A DNA stretch of 64,000 nucleotides from the NCBI RefSeq assembly GCF_020745735.1, contig NW_026867487.1, forward strand, positions 3,348,001 to 3,412,000, read 5' to 3'. Origin of the DNA: Hemiscyllium ocellatum (Eukaryota). The notes beneath the pieces are model-generated. The model had not been told where the DNA came from. It did not search any database and was given only the letters and a program-made list of their open reading frames with translations. Shown in pieces: positions 13,034 to 63,289 of the stretch. How positions within the stretch are numbered: the first letter of the stretch is position 1; each line of letters opens with the position of its first letter. Made by a program: the position numbers and the translations under genes.

Positions 13034-13526
13034 AACTTCTGTACATGGGGCAGTCTGTTATTATTACTGTGAGGTTTCTGAAAGTGTAGAAATGCACGAA
13101 AGAGTCAGTCAGCTGCAGTCCATTGATCATCAAATTGGTGAACTTGTCTGAGGTCTGAAATACTGCAGAAATGCGATCTTTTACAAAGTCTGCTTCATTC
13201 TCGCCTCCTTCAGAATATCTCCTCAGCAGATTCACGGGCTGTGTGCCTGACTGCAATCGGTACCAGCATATTGAATAATAGCTCTCTGTAGAATCATTGC
13301 TACAACGTAGAGTCACTGTCCCTCCTTCTGTTCGAGCATCTGATTACAGTAACTAAGCGACTGAATCTCCATGCCTCAGGTCTGAAATTAAAACAGACAT
13401 TAATTGCAAATTGTCAGGGTGGCATCAACTAAAATTGTGGTTTAATAAAGGAATTTGAATTGCGTTTCTTCCATATTTTCCCGTCAGACTTGATGTTCAC
13501 ACAGCTTAGATGCTGAGTAACCACAT
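13034..13526 (-). pseudogene. Family A V pseudogene with decayed RSS
   Basis: Stops in leader, donor GT>GA, FR1 stops, second Cys>Tyr (VHFYTF); cacagta-22-acagaagtt. Confidence 0.9.
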
Positions 13527-17850: not shown

Positions 17851-17889
17851 GGTTTTTTTACAGGTATAGATTTGATCTGTTTCACTATG
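17851..17889 (-). other. 23-bp-spacer RSS of the VH-like segment (non-canonical)
   Basis: CATAGTG-23 nt-AAAAAAACC directly after the coding end. Confidence 0.85.
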
Positions 17890-18364
17890 TCACTACACAA
17901 TAATATATCGCACTGTCTGATATTCTTAATGTCTTGATAGTCAAAGAGAAGGTGTTGTTTGATAAATCTTTGGCAGCAGTAACTCGTCCTGTCACCTCTG
18001 GATTATAATCCTTGCTGCTTTCGCTGTAGTAATAAACAAGCCATTGCAGGCCATTCCCAGGGCGTTCAATGTACCAGAACATCCTTTCGCTCCTCAGATC
18101 GAATCCGCTGGTTGCACAGGTCAGTGTCAGGGATTGCCCAGAGATACCTGACTCTGCCTGTTGCTGAGTCAACGTTACCACTGATTCGGCACCTAGTAAA
18201 GCAAAATGACATTCATTAAACCAGTGTGACTTGGCGTTGTGTACTTCTCCCCAGCGAGAGAATGAACAGAGGAAACGAAAATGGTTAAAAATTTGGAGAG
18301 AAGGGAATGGGATATACGCACTGCATAAGAATACAAGAATCAGAACCACAGATATCAGTGACAT
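17890..18364 (-). CDS. Immunoglobulin heavy-chain-like V segment (IgW/IgM VH or TAILV-like), intact ORF: leader 18322-18364, V exon 17890-18192
   Basis: Spliced MSLISVVLILVFLCSAES-VVTLTQQQAESGISGQSLTLTCATSGFDLRSERMFWYIERPGNGLQWLVYYYSESSKDYNPEVTGRVTAAKDLSNNTFSLTIKTLRISDSAIYYCVV; both Cys and Trp present; 129-nt GT-AG intron. Confidence 0.88.
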
Positions 18365-28538: not shown

Positions 28539-28577
28539 AGTTTTTGTACAGGAGTAAGACTGCTTATCATCACTGTG
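28539..28577 (-). other. Canonical 23-RSS
   Basis: CACAGTG-23-ACAAAAACT. Confidence 0.95.
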
Positions 28578-34722: not shown

Positions 34723-35227
34723 ATTATACCGAGTTGAAGAGGAAGGAGTGAACCAAGGAAAATACTTTGTGTTTTCCTTTAATCTACACATTCACTTTCA
34801 CCCCTCTACTCAATTTATAACAAAAGGCGACAGCCATCTGCCTCTGCGTTGACAGGACATCCTTGATAAAACTCCCTAGATGAACGTTTCTAAACATTTG
34901 AATGCGTTTCCCATCAGACAATAAGATCGACAGAACAACACACAGCAGAACACGTCGAAACACACGCATAAAAGTATCAAATCAAATATGCGCAACAAAA
35001 TGTTCTTATACACTCACACGTGAACATATACACACAAACACATACACGTGCACACATTTGCACTAATACGTGCATGTGATGATTCAAATAGTCGAAATCC
35101 CAGGACAATGCATTTTGGTTAGTTTGATCGTCAAAATGTATAAACAGCACTTCCTGCACTGGCCATTTCTGCACTGTAAAGCAGAAAGCCGCTATTTATT
35201 TCGGTGTTTTACTTCTGAAAATAAGGC

Positions 35228-35285
35228 ATGAAAATGCGGGTGCAATTATCATTGATTATCCAGAATGTGAAAGCAATCATCCCAC
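35228..35285 (+). pseudogene. Orphan family-B leader exon (open), B V exon missing
   Basis: MKMRVQLSLIIQNVKAIIP, 58 nt, donor GTTAGT; CACTTCC at 35148-35154. Confidence 0.7.
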
Positions 35286-35658
35286 GTTAGTTATATTTTT
35301 GATTCTCATCGTCAGACGTCATGTGGTCTTTTCATATTTTCAGTTTGAGACAGGGTAATTACTCAATTATTACTTTATGACTGAGTCTCAGGACGCAAGT
35401 GAAGGAAAAAAAATTGCTGGCATCTTGCAAACGAATGCATACATACATGTGGAAGGACAAGGGCAACAGAGAAATAGGCAAAATGTCAATGGGAAGTTCC
35501 CCTCCAATCACGCACCATCCTGACTTAGAAATGTATCACCCGTCCTTCAGTATCAGCACATGAATATTCTGCCTTTTCTTCCTTTCCAATATCCTGTCTA
35601 CCTCCACACCAAGTGATGCAGCCATTTGAAACAACAGTTCACCACCACCTCTTGCAGG

Positions 35659-36188: not shown

Positions 36189-36639
36189 ATGCGGTCACTC
36201 GCCAGCTCGGTTCTGTGGGCAGCAAGCCTAACAGGTAATTACAAAGGAAAGCATTTCGCATTTCTTCATCATAGTTTAAACTGAACCCGGTTTTCTCTTT
36301 CAGATCTAAGTCATGGAGATTCTGTCGCTCAGACGTTCGGACAGAAGGACGTGAAGTGACTCTAAGTTGTAACTGTGAAACTACAGTGAGCTACTATGCG
36401 TTATACTGGAACCGACAGCACCCAAACACACAGCCCGAGCTTATTGTGGGGAAGGGTACTGATTGTTCTGATTATAAAGCAAATATACGTAATATCATTT
36501 CTATATGGAACTTCAAACCTCAAAGAAATTTATCAGTTTGACTGTAAACTGGCTATGGCTCTTTGAACACTGCCATGTATTACTGCACTTTATTGGATGA
36601 CAGAGTGATACCAAACTGCCTCACCCCTGCAGAAAATTT
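36189..36639 (+). pseudogene. Family A V pseudogene
   Basis: Leader 36189-36234 intact; 13-nt FR1 deletion gives an early stop; further frameshifts; RSS cagagtg-23-agaaaattt. Confidence 0.9.
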
Positions 36640-39009: not shown

Positions 39010-40299
39010 ACTGACCATCGTGAAAATCACCAGGTGTTCAGTCAGAGGCAGAGCAACAGCATGCAGCATCATTCAATCTGACAGCTGCATTAACATACAC
39101 ACAGAAACACACAAACAAATAGGGTTAGTGTGGGGGTTAGTGCTGAGCTGTGTAAAGCGGACAGAGGAGTAATTATGGGAATGAAAGAGAGTCAGTGTGG
39201 AGAAATCAGACGTGGTCAGCACGTGGATTACAGATCTATCTAATCAGAACTTCTAAGGATGTTTCTTGTTTCAATTCATCACGTCAGACTCTTGAAACCT
39301 CCTGAGAAACAAACGCAGTCTATCTAGTCTTTCCATGTCTATCTCTGATCTGAACATATTCAGTGCCCAAGCTCTGTGGCAAATCATTCCGCATATCATT
39401 TTGTCTCTGACAGAAGAAATGCCTCCTCACCTTGAACTGCAATGTTATTTTTTATTTTGAGAACACGCCATCTGCTCTTATGTTCTCCAACAGGTGATTC
39501 TCAGTCCAAACCATCTTGTCCTTTTTCAAATTCAAATTCGGAAACAACATTATTACTGGATATTTTAAAAAAAAGCCCTTCATAATTGAATACTGGGTGG
39601 TAAGCAAACAAAAGGCAACAAATTACAAACCAATGACCATCTATATAGAGAAGGCTAAGGGCAACTGATTAATGGAAACACCATCAGCTGCACGAACCCT
39701 TCCAAGTCAATCCCCATTCTGACTTGGAAATGTAACACCATTCCTTCATTGTCGTTTCGTGAAAATCTTGCAATTCCCTCTCCAACAGTTCCATGTATCA
39801 ATATACACAGGAAGTAAGAGTGCAGCTTCAAAAGACATCATGAAATTATCTTTTCAATATGTATTAAGAACGAGCAACAAAGTACGCCAGCGAGCGAAGC
39901 CCACATCTCCTCAGGCAACAAATCATCTCTCAGCCAGTGGCATCTTTGGTGAATCAAGTCGACATATTTTACAAAAGCAAATGTTGCGAATTTGAGACTC
40001 TGTCACATGGCAGGCCAATGTGAGTGTTTAAATATGTTTTTTTTTACTGCCAAAGAGACAAGCACAGGAGTGTGATGAGAAAAAATATGTTTTAAAAGTT
40101 ACTCTGAGAACAATGAGGCTGAGTACATCTACTCAGATACAACCACTGAAATGAATGGCCAGTTTCCATTTGGGTGATACAATGTATTTTCATGCAGCAG
40201 GATGCTTGTACCCTTGATGGATCTCAACATTTCCCCAAAGTTCCAGCCTGGTGCCCCAAGGTTTACTGCAGTCCTTAGCACATAGTCTTGGACATTGGA

Positions 40300-41290
40300 A
40301 GATGCCAATCTGCAACACTTGGTCGGGGTCAACTACTTGTTCTGGAAGACTAATTTCGGGCAGACCAAAGACCGCCTCTCACCAACTTGATGGTCCTCCA
40401 GGCACAGTTGATGTCTGTCTCAGATGCATCCCAAGGAACAGAATGTAGAGCACAGAGTCCAGCTGCTGAGAAGGACAGTCGACAGAAACCACTTGCATCT
40501 TCCTCCAGACGTCCCTTGCAAAGGCACATTCCATAACGAGTTGTGTGACAGTTACAATCCCTTTACAGCCACTTCAAAGGCAACATGCAGTCGTGCTCGG
40601 TATTCATGAAACATCTTCGCAGCTAAAGCCAAGAGATGTCCTAGCGCTCCTTGGAAAGTTCTGGTAATGAGGCATTCTGCCAAATAACTTTGACAATCTG
40701 CTCAGGGAAGCACACAACAGGATCTATCCTCTGCTTTTCCCTCAAGATCTCGAGAAGATATTACATGCAGACTGCTTCCTGATGGACTTGTCATCAAATG
40801 CAATTTTTCCGCAAATTTCTTTACAAAGAACAGGTGATACGGAAGGATGAAACTACTTGCTGTGTTCCACTGCAGCGAGACCAGTCTTATCCTTCGTAAC
40901 ACTGGGGTTGGGTGCAACCTCACTACATAGTGACACTTGGTATTTGTGTGCTGAAGGTCGATAGAAAGCTTGATGCAACCACACACGAAGGTGGCTACCA
41001 GGATGAGGGGAACATTGGATACGTTCTTTTACCCCTTATCCGGAATTTTGTACATGAATTCTCTGAAGATCAGGTCCATATTATAGATGAAACGGAGGGT
41101 GTCTTGGGCGAGTTGAACAAAATAGTTTTGGGTGATGTGCCAGACCTGCAAACAACATGGAGAGTGCCTCACACTGATGACAAAGTTTTTAGCCAGAATG
41201 ACAAGGAAACGGTGCTCCCAAAAGCCCAGTTTCCACTTTGGCAATGTATCCCTCCCAAGGTTTTGCGCATGTCCTGGCCTCTCTGAACAA
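40300..41290 (-). mobile_element. L1/Tx1-like LINE remnant
   Basis: VWHI.QN...QDTLRFI...MYK.PDKG and CGCIKL...TKCHYVVR motifs. Confidence 0.65.
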
Positions 41291-41996: not shown

Positions 41997-42487
41997 ATGT
42001 GTCTACTCAGCATCTGGGTAGTATGGGTCACAATTCTAGCAGGTAAATGTAGAGGAAATCCATTGTATATTTCTTTTTCAAATCACAGTTTAAACTGAAC
42101 CCAGACTGATAATTTGTAAATGATATCTGTTTGCTCTTTCAGATTCAAGTCATGGAAGTTCTGTCACTGTCACTGTCCTCAGATGGTCCCTCAGAAGGAG
42201 AACCTGTGACTCTTAGCTGTACCTATGTTACTACATTGAGCAGCTTACACGTTTTACTGGTACCGACAGCACCCAGAAACACAGCTGGAGTATATACTGT
42301 TCATAAAGACTAATGGTTATCAGGATAAAGCTGATTTTGCTAAACGTTGCTCCTCAGCAGAACTTCAAATCTCGAAGAAACTCACTAGCATGACTATCAC
42401 TGGGCTAGAACTGACTGACTCGGCCATGTATTACTGCGCTCTCAGTGACACAGTGATGATAAACAGTCTGTTTCCTGTACAAAAATT
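41997..42487 (+). pseudogene. Family A V pseudogene with two frameshifts but an intact RSS
   Basis: Leader 41997-42042 intact; -2 nt in FR1, +1 nt in CDR1; WYRQHPETQLEY...DSAMYYCALS; CACAGTG-23-ACAAAAATT at 42449-42487. Confidence 0.92.
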
Positions 42488-43616
42488 GTTTTTGGACCAT
42501 AGATAGTTGCATTTATTGAGGTTTTTGTAGAGTGTCAGAAATTAATCCGTGCTTTCAGGGGCCTCACCAAACGCAAGGAAGGAAACCAAACTAACCCTGA
42601 ATCAAATTGTCACCTAACTGTTTCCCTGAACTGAGAAAATAAACTGCAAAATCTGAGCATACGAACAGAGACAGAACAGAATGATGTGTGACCACGCCTG
42701 TTCTGATCCCTGCCACCCTGAGATTTGCTCTGCTGTGATTTATAGACAGCCTGCTGGGAGACAGCTCTCCTTTCTGGAGTTTCACATCCTCATCGCCTAC
42801 TCAAGGTTAAGAGAGGGGAGCATTCTGAGACACTACAGCAGTTTGCTTAGGGCGGGGTTTTAGAATGACTGATGATGCTAATTTGATCGTATTGAGGGAA
42901 TGCTGCAGCAATCCTTTCTTCATTAATTTGCACACACGGAACTGTATCCATTTGTGTCAATCATAACATGGCCATTGGCTATATGTGTATGTGTGTGAGT
43001 GTTTTTATAAGTGTATGTGTGTCGATGTGTCTGTGTATTTGTGAGTGTCTGAGTATGTCTTACCTGTTTGCATTGAGTATGTGTCTTTGAGTGTTTTTAT
43101 GCGCATCAAAGTGCAAGAAGATTCAATGTTAGAATGAAATTATTCATATTGCACCTGTGCCGTACATCAGTCAATTTTCCTGAGCTGGTATTTCTCGGTT
43201 TCATTGCCAACCGTCTCATAATGATAGATTATTCCTGTTTATTTCTCCAAGGTCATTCAGTTCCGTCTCTTTTACTCTCTGTCTCAGGCTCACCTTCCTT
43301 CTCTAATTCTTTTAGATTCTTTGCAAATCAGTGAACTCAGCACAAAACTGGTTGGAGACACCACTATGACAAATAGGAAGTGTTGAGACATTGTCTTTAG
43401 TCTCAAATCATCGAGTTTTCTTTCTGACTGCATTTTCACAGTGGAGTGATTACACTATTTTTTCTCCCAGTGGAACTAATGTGGTGCATAAGCGGGCACA
43501 AGTCTTCGCATTTTGGATCGTGTGTGAGTAGAATATAACAGCTACCCTCCCTTGCTTTGGCCAGCTGCGCACTATACAGAACAGAGCTGCGGTTTATTTC
43601 ATTATCCTGTCAACAG

Positions 43617-43671
43617 ATGAAGGTGTGATTCAAATTGATTAACATCATTATCCTGAATGTAATCAACCCAG
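43617..43671 (+). pseudogene. Orphan type-D leader exon D5
   Basis: MKV*FKLINIIILNVINP, CCAG|GTGAGT. Confidence 0.7.
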
Positions 43672-43967
43672 GTGAGTTACTCTTGAGATTCTTAGGGCAT
43701 AGCGATATGCAGTATGAATATCCCTACCTTTGGGTCAAATAGATCTGGTTTCTAGATTCGCCTCGTCAAAACGTACGCATAACATTTCTGAAGAGTTTGA
43801 TCAGGAATCTGATGCACTTCGAATTCTGATCGATTTTGATTGATGTAATATTTCCATATTGAACACCGGGGAACCACAACGCTCATTTTCACTCAGTAAT
43901 TGCTGCTTCACTGCAACATTGTTGTGGTTGGGATCAGAACGCTCTCACTATAGCTTCTATCTCCTGG

Positions 43968-45097
43968 CGTTTCTGTACTAGGTGCTCATTGGTTTGTATC
44001 ACGATAATGATCACCACACAGACGTACGCGGCAGCATCCTCCCCACGATGTCTCTGATGGTCCAAGTGCTGCAGTTCGGTTCTCAGTGAAGATTGGTTTG
44101 ATTCTTTGTTGGTCTGAGCACCTTGCCCAAGGCAGTTGTCAGAAGCTGTGGCTCCAATCCACCACGCCACTGATACCACTTCGAGAAGATGATTGAGGTG
44201 TTGGTCCTGCATTTCATTGTCACCGTGGAACCTTTTACAGCTACTAATGCTGGAGGAATCTGTGGGAACCGCTCCATTACCGGGAGCTCTGTAACATGGT
44301 ATCAAACTTACATGGGAGAAATTTTGAGTGAAGAGAATGTTGCAAGCATTCAACTCACTAGAAACACGTCGCATTTCACAATGGGGAAACTTGCAATTCA
44401 TTCCAATGGGTATATCGTGGTGTATGTTTTGACATCTCGTGTCTTTTCAAACTGATTTTAATAAAGTCTAATCCCTTCACACCCTCGGGCTTTACAATAT
44501 GGCAGTTAAAGAAAGACACTAAAACCATTCACATTATCACAGTACATGTCAGAGACTTTGATTTTTAATACTCACTCTGAGAAAACGTCCTGACTTGAAG
44601 CACCAAAAATGCAGTTAGTTATTGGGTGATTAGACGCCTGAGAAGATGGGAGCGTCGCTGGATGGCAGTGTTTGTTACCTGTTCCAAATACTCGGAGAGA
44701 AAGTCGTGGTGCCTTTTAAAATGAATACATTCATTGTTGACGAGGTAGACCCAGGGAGCCGTGAGAGATTGGAGGACAGGATTTTGACATAACAGCACTG
44801 AAGGAACCGCCCGAAAAGTCCAAGTCAGTGTGGTGTGTGAATTGCCGGGGAATTTGATGTTGGTGGTGCTTCCACTTATCAGCTGCCCTTGTACTTCTCG
44901 ACCGAAGTGGCCATTGGTTTGGAAGGTTCTGGAATTATTTTTTTTCCTTACTTCCGAGCACCCAATTTCAGTGACAATTCTTTCTCAAAATGAAACCGTG
45001 AAAAATACATGACGGCCAAGGGTGAGAATCTAAATTATAACTCACCTGGGATTATTCCATTGAGCTTGAAGAAACTCAACAGCTCCTCTGCCTTCAT
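43968..45097 (-). pseudogene. Family B V pseudogene B3 (leader 45046-45097, 757-nt intron, V exon 44007-44288, degenerate 23-RSS 43968-44006)
   Basis: MKAEELLSFFKLNGIIP|ELPVMERFPQIPPALVAVKGSTVTMKCRTNTSIIFSKWYQWRGGLEPQLL; frameshifted RIKPIFTENRTAAL/TIRDIV/EDAAAYVCVV; tatcgtg-23-acagaaacg. Confidence 0.82.
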
Positions 45098-53900: not shown

Positions 53901-54292
53901 AATAAGAAAAGCTCAAGCCAAAATACGAAACAAATTATTGGTCTTGACTGCATAAGGACATAATTGAATTTTCGTGTGGAGGTAGACACAAGGAGCATTT
54001 GGAAAGGGGTGGACAAAGCTGGACCCAGTGACGCTGAAGGAGCTGTGACATGTTTGCATGTTAGGATGGGGACTGACTTTGAGATTTATTTAAGCTGGTG
54101 GCGCTCCTGCTTATTGGCTGCCCTTGTCCTTCTACACGGTAGTGGTCATTGGTTTGGAAAGAGAGTTGCTTTTTATGCTTACTTACCAACACTCAATAAT
54201 AAGTGGTATATTTTCAAAATCAAGTAATAGCACAAAGTGGAATTGCAAAAAGATCGCATGATACTCAAGGGTGGCAGTCTAGGGTAACTCAC

Positions 54293-54350
54293 CTGGGATG
54301 ATTTCATTCAACTTTAGAATAATCAACGTTCGTCTCATCTGCGCCTTCAT
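54293..54350 (-). pseudogene. Orphan family-B leader exon (open), V exon lost
   Basis: MKAQMRRTLIILKLNEIIP, CCCAG|GTGAGT; TATAAAA ~80 nt upstream. Confidence 0.75.
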
Positions 54351-55067
54351 TCCTTATTGATAGGTTTGCAACACCGTGATTAAAAAAAACCTGCTCTCCT
54401 CTTTACGAGGCACAACAGACCAGAGCTGTTTTTATACCTCCACTCAACACAAACCATAGGCACAGCATGGACCTCCAAACGTTTCCATCTGCACATTCTG
54501 GTGTTCGTGCTCATGTATATGTGTCCGTGTGCATATTTGGTTTAATATCTTTCCGCGTGTATTTCAATGTGTTCTGTTGTGCATTTTTCTGTTTGTGTCG
54601 TTGTCTTTTGGGAAGTACATTACAAAGATGAGAAACGTTCATCTGCAGAGGCGTTTCACGATTCTATTGTCAGCTCAACCGCAACTGGCCGTCGCTTTCT
54701 GAGATAAATTGACAGGATGATAAAGCATGAGTTTAGAAAAGAAAATGTTCTTACATTCTCTTTCTCTGCTTCTTGTGTTCAGAGTTAAAAATCACAAAAC
54801 ACCACGTTAGAGTTCGATAGATTTCTTTGGAAGTTTAAGCTTTTGGAGAGTTGCTCCTTCATCAGGTAACTAGTGGGGCAGGATGATATGTGTCCGATGA
54901 TCCTCCCGCACTAGCTACCTGAAGAAGGAGTGACACTCCAAAAACTTGTACTTCCAAGTAAACCTATTGGACTATAAACTGATGTTGTGTGATTTTTATC
55001 TTAATCCACCCCAGTCCAACACCAGCTCCTCCACAGCCTCTCTCCCTTCAGTTCAACACGGTGCAAT

Positions 55068-62300: not shown

Positions 62301-62690
62301 AAACGTCCATTCCCTCAAGCACTCAGTAGCTCAATAGCAGGAGTGTGCACTATCGGCAAGATGGACTGCAGGATTAACCAAGGATTCACAGACAGCATCT
62401 TGCAAACTCATGACCGCTTCCATCTAGAAAGACAAAGGCAGCAGATAGGTGCAGTCTCCGCCAGCTTCAAGTTCCACTCCAAGTCACTCACTATTCTGAC
62501 TTGGAAATGTATCGCCTTTCCTTCACTGCCTCTGGTCAAAATCCTGGAATTTCCTCCCTAATGCAGTGTGGGTCAATCCACAGTGGTGGACTGCAGCAGT
62601 TTAAGAAGGCAGTTCATCACCAGCTTCTCCAGGGCATCCATGGATGGGCAATAAATACTGTTGAGCTAGCGATGCCCACATCCAACAACA
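59320..62690 (+). mobile_element. Long decayed HER1-like LINE with an HE1-like SINE inserted on the minus strand at ~61345-61625
   Basis: MWNIAQLCPVHKK..DKS..ADYR..SLLSILSKVME RT motif; GVPQASVPGPT; same 3' tail as 26420-27480. Confidence 0.75.
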
Positions 62691-63159
62691 TGGATCAATT
62701 AGAAAAAAACTTGCTTCATATCAACCTTGGCCTCCTGTTGTTTCTCCTGTATCAATGCCAAAACATTAATAAAACTCTATGTACGTCTTTGCGCACATAA
62801 TGTCGTCTTCATCTTCCTTTGTAGATGTCGCTCCATCCTTAGACTGAGCTACAGCTATATTGTCTCTTTCGTTTGGATTCTCCTCAATGAAGTCAGCCAC
62901 AGATACCATTATAGAAAAGGAGAAAAAAAAAACGTATGACGACTTCTTTAATCTCTTTAATTTTGTCTTCTTCTCGGCTTCACTTTTACAGTGGTTTCTC
63001 TCGTTCCTTATACAACTTTTATTCACTAGATTTAACTAAAGTAATGAATAAGTGGTCACGGGGCTTTGCTTGTCGGATAATCTGTGAGTGGAAAGATAAA
63101 ATCTACAATAAATAGCAGACCGGTTGCTTATTTTGGTGTTGTACTCCTGTCAATTGAAC

Positions 63160-63220
63160 ATGAAGATAGTGGCACGATTACAATGGATTACACTCATTTT
63201 CCTCAATAGAATCAACACAA
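63160..63220 (+). pseudogene. Orphan type-D leader exon D6
   Basis: MKIVARLQWITLIFLNRINT, donor GT>AT, same lesion as D3. Confidence 0.7.
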
Positions 63221-63289
63221 ATGAGTTACACGTGAGATTATTAGGGGCTACTGATGGGCAGTGGTGGGTCGCTCCATCTTGGTCACATC

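Follow-up and report, generated by a model that had tools for sequence, protein, structure and literature searches.

Three V pseudogenes of a probable TRAV33 subgroup in a TRA/TRD-type V array of the shark Hemiscyllium ocellatum

The TRAV segments of the hemiscylliid shark Chiloscyllium punctatum have been catalogued by Giorgetti et al. (Nature 2023; PMC10322711, Supplementary file 5) in a table that, according to the authors, was made by mapping to the genome the V segments that were found expressed in 5'RACE cDNA primed on TRAC. Most entries in the C. punctatum sheet have leader introns of ~100 nt, whereas those of TRAV02, TRAV33, TRAV49, TRAV52, and TRAV61_4 span 720 to 900 nt, and TRAV37_5 also has a long intron. 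The distance from splice acceptor to second Cys is 272 nt in TRAV33 and likewise in TRAV06 and TRAV15, but only TRAV33 combines the short exon with the long intron. TRAV33 is listed as “F + 960300-961396,” with an RSS value of 15, an intron at 59-825, and a length of 1097, and the entry for TRAV32 gives 440 nt, an intron at 47-144, and an RSS value of 15. On the published map, TRAV33 is the last V before TRAJ_001 and lies 33 kb upstream of it. The text of the paper apparently does not discuss the long-intron TRAVs as one clade or a function of the long intron, and a definition of the flag “F” was not found in it.

Several other V types also invite comparison. Shark TAILV and the supporting Vdelta of NAR-TCR reside in the same array as TRAV segments, as does the family described below. 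The supporting Vdelta segments of NAR-TCR are leaderless and follow a NAR V-D-J unit. Kappa V segments carry 12-spacers, and RFSGSGSG is a light-chain FR3 motif, whereas a pattern of the GKVQATLHREQKRSTLTI type is Valpha/Vdelta-like.

We analyzed a 64-kb window (the whole stretch of H. ocellatum DNA read here) and found it to be a TRA/TRD-type V array containing V genes of one family, here called A, and a VH-like V at 17885-18178. Family A consists of TRAV segments resembling TRAV32 of C. punctatum, and perfect signals of the form CACAGTG-23-ACAAAAAnn were located at 28577, 42449, 51037, and 58600. One TRAV-type V exon (13083-13364, minus strand) looks defective, with an in-frame TAA in its leader (ATGTGGTTACTCAGCATCTAA). 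Another (42161-42455, plus strand) is split over two frames, yet its RSS at 42449 is perfect (CACAGTG-23-ACAAAAATT).

Three further units in the array, B1, B2, and B3, make up a second family, B (Table 1). In each, a long phase-1 intron separates the leader exon from a short V exon, behind which lies a degenerate RSS with 23-nt spacing. The outer coordinates assigned to all three by the initial annotation proved exact, from leader start to nonamer end. Pairwise alignment of the V exons, together with ~80 nt upstream and the RSS, gave 60 to 76% nucleotide identity. Because homology reaches the leader and intron as well, B1, B2, and B3 are related as whole gene units, beyond a motif, and their assignment to one V family is borne out. 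They are homologous V gene segments, and all are pseudogenes.

Table 1. Family-B units, relics, and orphan leaders in the window (minus-strand positions of subfeatures are given in reading direction)
Feature	Position	Strand	Description
B1	2901-4775	+	Pseudogene; leader ATG at 2901
B1 leader	2901-2958	+	
B1 intron insertion	3633-4351	+	~720-nt dispersed repeat
B1 V exon	from 4463	+	Five 1-nt deletions and one 4-nt deletion
B1 Cys104 codon	4723-4725	+	TGA
B1 heptamer	4737-4743	+	CGTCGTG; RSS degenerate
B1 nonamer	4767-4775	+	CCAGGAACT
B2	10553-11664	+	Pseudogene
B2 leader	10553-10610	+	Start codon ATG changed to ATC at 10553; in-frame TGA
B2 V exon	from 11363	+	Three 1-nt deletions and one 17-nt deletion; stops TAG, TAA, TGA
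B2 heptamer	11626-11632	+	TGCCATG; RSS degenerate
B2 nonamer	11656-11664	+	CCAGAAACT
B3	43968-45097	-	Least decayed family-B pseudogene; tblastn with GCC20452.1 and codon-level alignment to TRAV33
B3 leader	45097-45046	-	52 nt; ATGAAGGCAGAGGAGCTGTTGAGTTTCTTCAAGCTCAATGGAATAATCCCAG, then donor GTGAGT
B3 intron	45045-44289	-	757 nt
B3 V exon	44288-44007	-	After acceptor TTACAG/AGCTC
B3 in-frame stop	44083-44085	-	TGA (CGG in TRAV33); V exon codon 69
B3 1-nt deletion	just after 44039	-	~20 nt before Cys104 codon
B3 Cys104 codon	44020-44018	-	
B3 RSS	44006-43968	-	23-nt spacer
B3 heptamer	44006-44000	-	TATCGTG
B3 nonamer	43976-43968	-	ACAGAAACG
B4 relic	39497-40246	+	Leader intron alone, 67-70% identical to B1/B2 introns; no leader, no V exon after
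B-type promoter, leader, and ~190 nt of B intron	54096-54370	-	No V exon downstream
Intact B-type leader	54350-54294	-	58 nt (19 codons), MKAQMRRTLIILKLNEIIP, GT donor; inside promoter-leader module 54370-54278
B-type leader and intron start	35142-35583	+	Leader 35228-35284; module 35220-35295; no B V exon
Short B-type leader copy	27990-27897	-	Promoter-plus-leader module, no B V exon
Short B-type leader copy	26050-25955	-	Promoter-plus-leader module, no B V exon
Short B-type leader copy	63139-63235	+	Promoter-plus-leader module, no B V exon
Inverted B-type leader copy	5134-5064	-	300-400 nt 3' of B1 RSS
Inverted B-type leader copy	12033-11938	-	300-400 nt 3' of B2 RSS
Inverted B-type leader copy	43606-43686	+	300-400 nt 3' of B3 RSS

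The family-B units have the split leader of TRAV/TRDV segments, in which a phase-1 intron follows a short leader exon and the acceptor lies a few codons ahead of the mature protein. Their leaders are 52 to 58 nt long and end in ...CCAG/GT; those of B1 and B2 hold 19 codons and that of B3 holds 17, each with 1 nt more, in agreement with the 17 to 19 codons first proposed. A leader-to-V distance of ~750 nt, suggested at the outset for all three, holds for B2 and B3 but not for B1, in which the leader lies ~1,500 nt from the V exon owing to the dispersed repeat inserted in its intron. Similarly, the acceptor had been given as YGYAG/AGCTC, which fits B1 and B2 but not B3 (TTACAG); the shorter form CAG/AGCTC is common to the three. 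The 23-nt spacing is present in each unit, as originally described, and the nonamers are recognizable. A functional 23-spacer RSS has a CAC-led heptamer and an A-rich nonamer directly 3' of Cys104; CAC is absent from all three heptamers, and B1, B2, and B3 therefore qualify only as pseudogene members of their family. Copies of the ~720-nt repeat of the B1 intron also occur at 31304-30602, 48184-47778, and 15724-15441.

Families A and B share the locus, the split-leader plan, and a 23-RSS at +15, but they show only 21 to 27% amino acid identity, in keeping with the earlier suggestion that B is a lineage distinct from A. They also differ in gene anatomy: family A has a 46-nt leader, an intron of ~100 nt (short, as had been noted), and a Trp-to-Cys distance of 59 residues, whereas the corresponding values in family B are 52 to 58 nt, ~750 nt, and 53 residues.

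Using the longest B3 reading frame (68 aa) as the query, we searched 1.84 billion representative proteins exhaustively with HMMER and found one single-domain relative (E 1.9e-9, 48% identity over residues 2-68); numerous light-chain-type multi-V gene models, 30 to 40% identical, were returned as well. The relative, GCC20452.1 (A0A401RQL8; P0007 in our searches), is annotated as “hypothetical protein chiPu_0019012” of C. punctatum and has the sequence MKTEERLLLIILRLNAFIP/ELLANEQIAQSPLALEAVEGSTVTMHCSTSALLSFVKWYQWRGGRDLKLLIVVSGSLVTAGKVQATLHREQKRSTLTISDVGRGDAAIYLCGV, after which the gene model continues through the RSS. A word-indexed homologue search yielded no candidates with the B3 frame and only GCC20452.1 itself with GCC20452.1; the absence from this search of any other annotated family protein of 90 to 287 aa is a weak negative, as V segments are often unannotated as proteins. 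GCC20452.1 passes the Pfam V-set model (42.7 bits against a cutoff of 26). The 68-aa B3 frame scanned alone against Pfam gave nothing at an E of ≤1 because it is half a domain; a V profile from which all family-B sequences had been left out did match B3 (13.2 bits, domain E 2.5e-5). The V-set domain with Cys23, Trp41, and Cys104 is present in the family, in its intact protein; of the window copies, B1 and B2 no longer have it.

The gene that encodes GCC20452.1 lies on BEZZ01001781.1 (L001) and has its leader at nt 1-58, its intron at nt 59-825, and the end of the Cys codon at nt 1097. In its RSS, 23 nt separate the heptamer CACCATG from the nonamer ACAGAAACC; counted from the first base of the Cys codon, the heptamer starts at +15. 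These values agree number for number with the published TRAV33 entry. In addition, TRAV32 was located exactly where the table predicts (L001 2851-2412, minus strand, ending 7150 nt upstream of TRAV33), with an ATG, a GTGAGT donor at 47, a CAG acceptor at 144, a terminal Cys, and CACAGTG at +15, and this match at the predicted distance makes the identification of the GCC20452.1 gene with TRAV33 secure. The DNA and peptide strings of GCC20452.1 had no match in the supplements of PMC10322711, where the table gives coordinates and no sequences, and a full-text literature search for WYQWRGG returned no paper. Retroelement-type ORFs, with reverse-transcriptase-like and endonuclease-like motifs, flank TRAV32-TRAV33 in C. 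punctatum (L001 18085-18513, plus strand, and 113-1504, minus strand).

The leader, intron, and short V exon of TRAV33 can be aligned with those of B1, B2, and B3. TRAV33 has the same gene plan as family B, with the MK..LLIIL.LN..IP leader, a phase-1 intron of ~750 to 770 nt, the TTACAG/AGCTC acceptor, the short V exon, and a 23-RSS with the nonamer ACAGAAAC(C/G). B3 is 77% identical to TRAV33 in the leader, 69% in the intron (alignable throughout), and 71% in the V exon, with one exon indel, and the V exons of B1 and B2 are 63 to 65% identical to it, with introns that are alignable too. In tblastn of GCC20452.1 on the window, B3 was matched over 83 aa (47% identity, E 2.9e-19, one stop), and B1 and B2 in several short frames, along with all B-type leaders; matches to family A reached just 21 to 25% identity. 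The short spacing from Trp to the second Cys, first noticed in the pseudogenes, is real and a trait of the family: Trp41 and Cys104 are 53 residues (159 nt) apart in the intact gene, compared with 59 residues (177 nt) in family A. A short V exon is not unique to family B, given the 272 nt to Cys of TRAV06 and TRAV15.

Based on this evidence, B1, B2, and B3 very probably belong to a single TRAV (possibly TRAV/DV) subgroup of hemiscylliid sharks, in which they are germline segments without function and C. punctatum TRAV33 is the intact representative. TRAV33 is intact and has a CAC-bearing heptamer, whereas B1 to B3 are dead. The initial annotation had supposed that functional members might exist elsewhere, and C. 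punctatum does have an intact, functional-looking one; its further claim that the family could be reconstructed only from three pseudogenes has to be given up, as GCC20452.1 is public and is catalogued as TRAV33 “F” (PMC10322711). The possibility it had raised, of a TRAV/DV family that is well described and normal in length, is half right: the subgroup is catalogued, but the text gives no description of it and its V exon is short. Since the lineage is already catalogued, what the window holds is an ordinary set of pseudogenes from a known TRAV subgroup and not a lost or new lineage.

The window also holds a solitary leader intron (B4), longer promoter-leader relics, and scattered leader copies (Table 1), and the orphan leaders are homologues of the family-B leader. 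The V that follows the relic at 35142-35583 belongs to family A (36326-36598) and has its own 46-nt leader. Beside B4, the string CACAGAG-24-ACAGAAACC at 40451 was considered as an RSS and rejected; with no V exon ahead of it, we treat it as a chance match. A stretch of 150 to 290 nt of B intron (44931-44777, minus strand) recurs outside the B genes at 62393-62683 (plus), 26766-26476 (minus), and 39623-39770 (plus), in every case with a same-strand B-type orphan leader 430 to 460 nt downstream of it, and was without a match in Rfam and tRNA scans. In the place after TRAV33 equivalent to that of the inverted leaders, we observed a weak partial leader match (L001 12085-12051, E 8e-5) that overlaps a dispersed repeat and may be spurious.

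One could see in these elements an old V lineage, kappa-like in length and in FR1-FR2, that was retained in the TCR alpha/delta locus with a conserved, regulatory leader intron of ~750 nt; the orphan leaders, including the inverted copies 3' of each B RSS, would then be remains or parts of that regulation instead of debris. We regard this scenario as unlikely and keep to the reading of B1, B2, and B3 as dead members of the TRAV33 subgroup.

The class of V to which the subgroup belongs was examined with the intact protein. Against human and mouse germlines in Swiss-Prot, GCC20452.1 showed 30 to 32% identity to TRAV21, 27, 34, 41, 20, and 17 and 30 to 33% to mouse kappa V-VI, and its identity to TRBV, IGLV, TRGV9, and IGHV was lower than that to TRAV and IGKV. 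In a phmmer search of the PDB with the whole domain, kappa chains and TCR alpha chains were mixed at 42 to 50 bits, and the nearest named ESM Atlas clusters were TRAV41, TVA11, and TCR alpha chain. When the TRAV33 V domain was modeled with AF2 (pLDDT 77) and compared with Swiss-Prot folds, every V class scored at an E of about 1e-5; structure thus does not discriminate, and we used the identity column alone. At the sequence level, Valpha and Vkappa are equally near to the family.

These affinities raise the question of whether family B and TRAV33 represent an Ig light-chain-type (kappa-like) V lineage in the TCR alpha/delta locus, a counterpart of the VH-like TAILV. In the PDB, the B3 frame had Vkappa in all of its top matches, but kappa chains are heavily over-represented in that database, and when the query was the whole domain of the intact protein, human TCR alpha chains scored level with Vkappa (44 to 48 bits). 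GCC20452.1 is nearer to human-type (mammalian) Vkappa (35%, 40.8 bits, almost gapless) than to shark family A TRAV (27%, 29.3 bits); human TRAV germlines, however, equal IGKV in identity. The gap pattern around CDR2, C'', and the D strand and the 53-residue Trp-to-Cys length are those of Vkappa, and FR1-FR2 (TQSP.SL.A..G..VT..C...WYQ...G..P.LL) is likewise shared, whereas FR3 reads GKVQATLHREQKRSTLTI, without the RFSGSGSG of light chains. As in the adjoining TRAVs, the RSS lies at +15 and its spacer is 23 nt and not 12 nt long, and the neighbors are TCR V genes, where a kappa V segment would be expected in a V-J-C minicluster. Finally, the intact member was published as a TRAV from a TRAC-primed repertoire (PMC10322711). 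We therefore consider a kappa-type origin very unlikely. Unlike TAILV, family B is not VH-like; it is 27% identical to the local VH-like V, and IGHV is its weakest class. Locus, RSS type, FR3 pattern, and published TRAC-based naming all point to family B being a TRAV(/DV) subgroup, and the alpha/delta type first proposed for it stands on locus and 23-spacer RSS.

Decay is much further advanced in B1 and B2 than in B3. In B1, the splice donor GT has become AT, and the Trp41 codon is lost; B2 has a mutated start codon, is also without the Trp41 codon, and has a TGA at Cys104. Two 1-nt deletions and the TGA at Cys104 are common to B1 and B2, and we infer from these shared lesions that the duplication that produced them (76 to 79% identity now) copied an already dead gene. 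B3 is a separate, older branch of the family, nearer to TRAV33 than B1 and B2 are.

The main frame of the B3 exon translates to ELPVMERFPQIPPALVAVKGSTVTMKCRTNTSIIFSKWYQWRGGLEPQLL...NLH and then meets a stop. When this copy is aligned with the intact relative, a single frameshift and a single stop suffice, rather than several, and the codons for Cys23, Trp41, and Cys104 are kept, with the frame broken before Cys104. Relative to the CACCATG heptamer of TRAV33, CAC has become TAT, and the leader is 6 nt shorter than that of TRAV33, with a weakened hydrophobic core (MKAEELLSFFKLNGIIP). The dS between B3 and TRAV33 is about 0.49 and the dN/dS about 0.68. With a dS of about 0.5 and flanks that are 53 to 63% identical, the two genes are old paralogues and not orthologues.

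The small number of exon lesions in B3, one stop and one 1-nt deletion relative to TRAV33 with all three landmark codons retained, could be taken to mean that B3 is functional and that its defects are assembly or sequencing errors. Four independent errors would be needed (the TGA stop, the 1-nt deletion, two substitutions removing the heptamer CAC, and the 6-nt leader deletion with its weakened core), and the V exon is no more similar to TRAV33 than the intron is (71% and 69%), which, together with the dN/dS, leaves no sign of recent constraint; we find a functional B3 highly improbable. With the heptamer CAC lost and the frames broken in all three, the window copies, as members of the TRAV33 subgroup, are predicted to be incapable of joining or of expression as V genes.

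It is scarcely credible that the B V exons are the supporting Vdelta of decayed NAR-TCR cassettes with a NAR V-D-J remnant as the long intron: an acceptor-led V exon far from its leader fits such a cassette, but every B has its own leader, which in the intact relative is spliced directly to V (published intron coordinates agree), the ~750-nt intron is conserved as a unit between B3 and TRAV33 and is too short for NAR V plus D plus J, and a V-domain profile finds nothing in the B introns in any frame, so that a decayed cassette is excluded.

In a working member of the TRAV33 subgroup, a leader exon of 58 nt would be followed by a phase-1 intron whose length, ~770 nt, is unusual among V genes, then by a V exon with 272 nt to the second Cys, and finally by a 23-spacer RSS that begins at +15 relative to the first base of that codon. 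RAG would presumably recombine such a gene with a TRAJ bearing a 12-RSS, or with a TRD D segment, for expression together with the alpha (or delta) constant region. Alpha usage is taken from the published table, and the place of TRAV33 as the last V before TRAJ_001 would be compatible with delta usage too. An intact family-B member may be present elsewhere in the genome of H. ocellatum, of which the 64-kb window was read here.

The H. ocellatum window extends a TRAV subgroup, already catalogued in a sister genus, by three pseudogenes and several fragments of genes, which is of little import beyond annotation; for the TRAV33 subgroup, the array is here a graveyard. V genes with leader introns of ~750 nt do exist, and pipelines that expect introns of 100 nt easily miss or mis-pair them.
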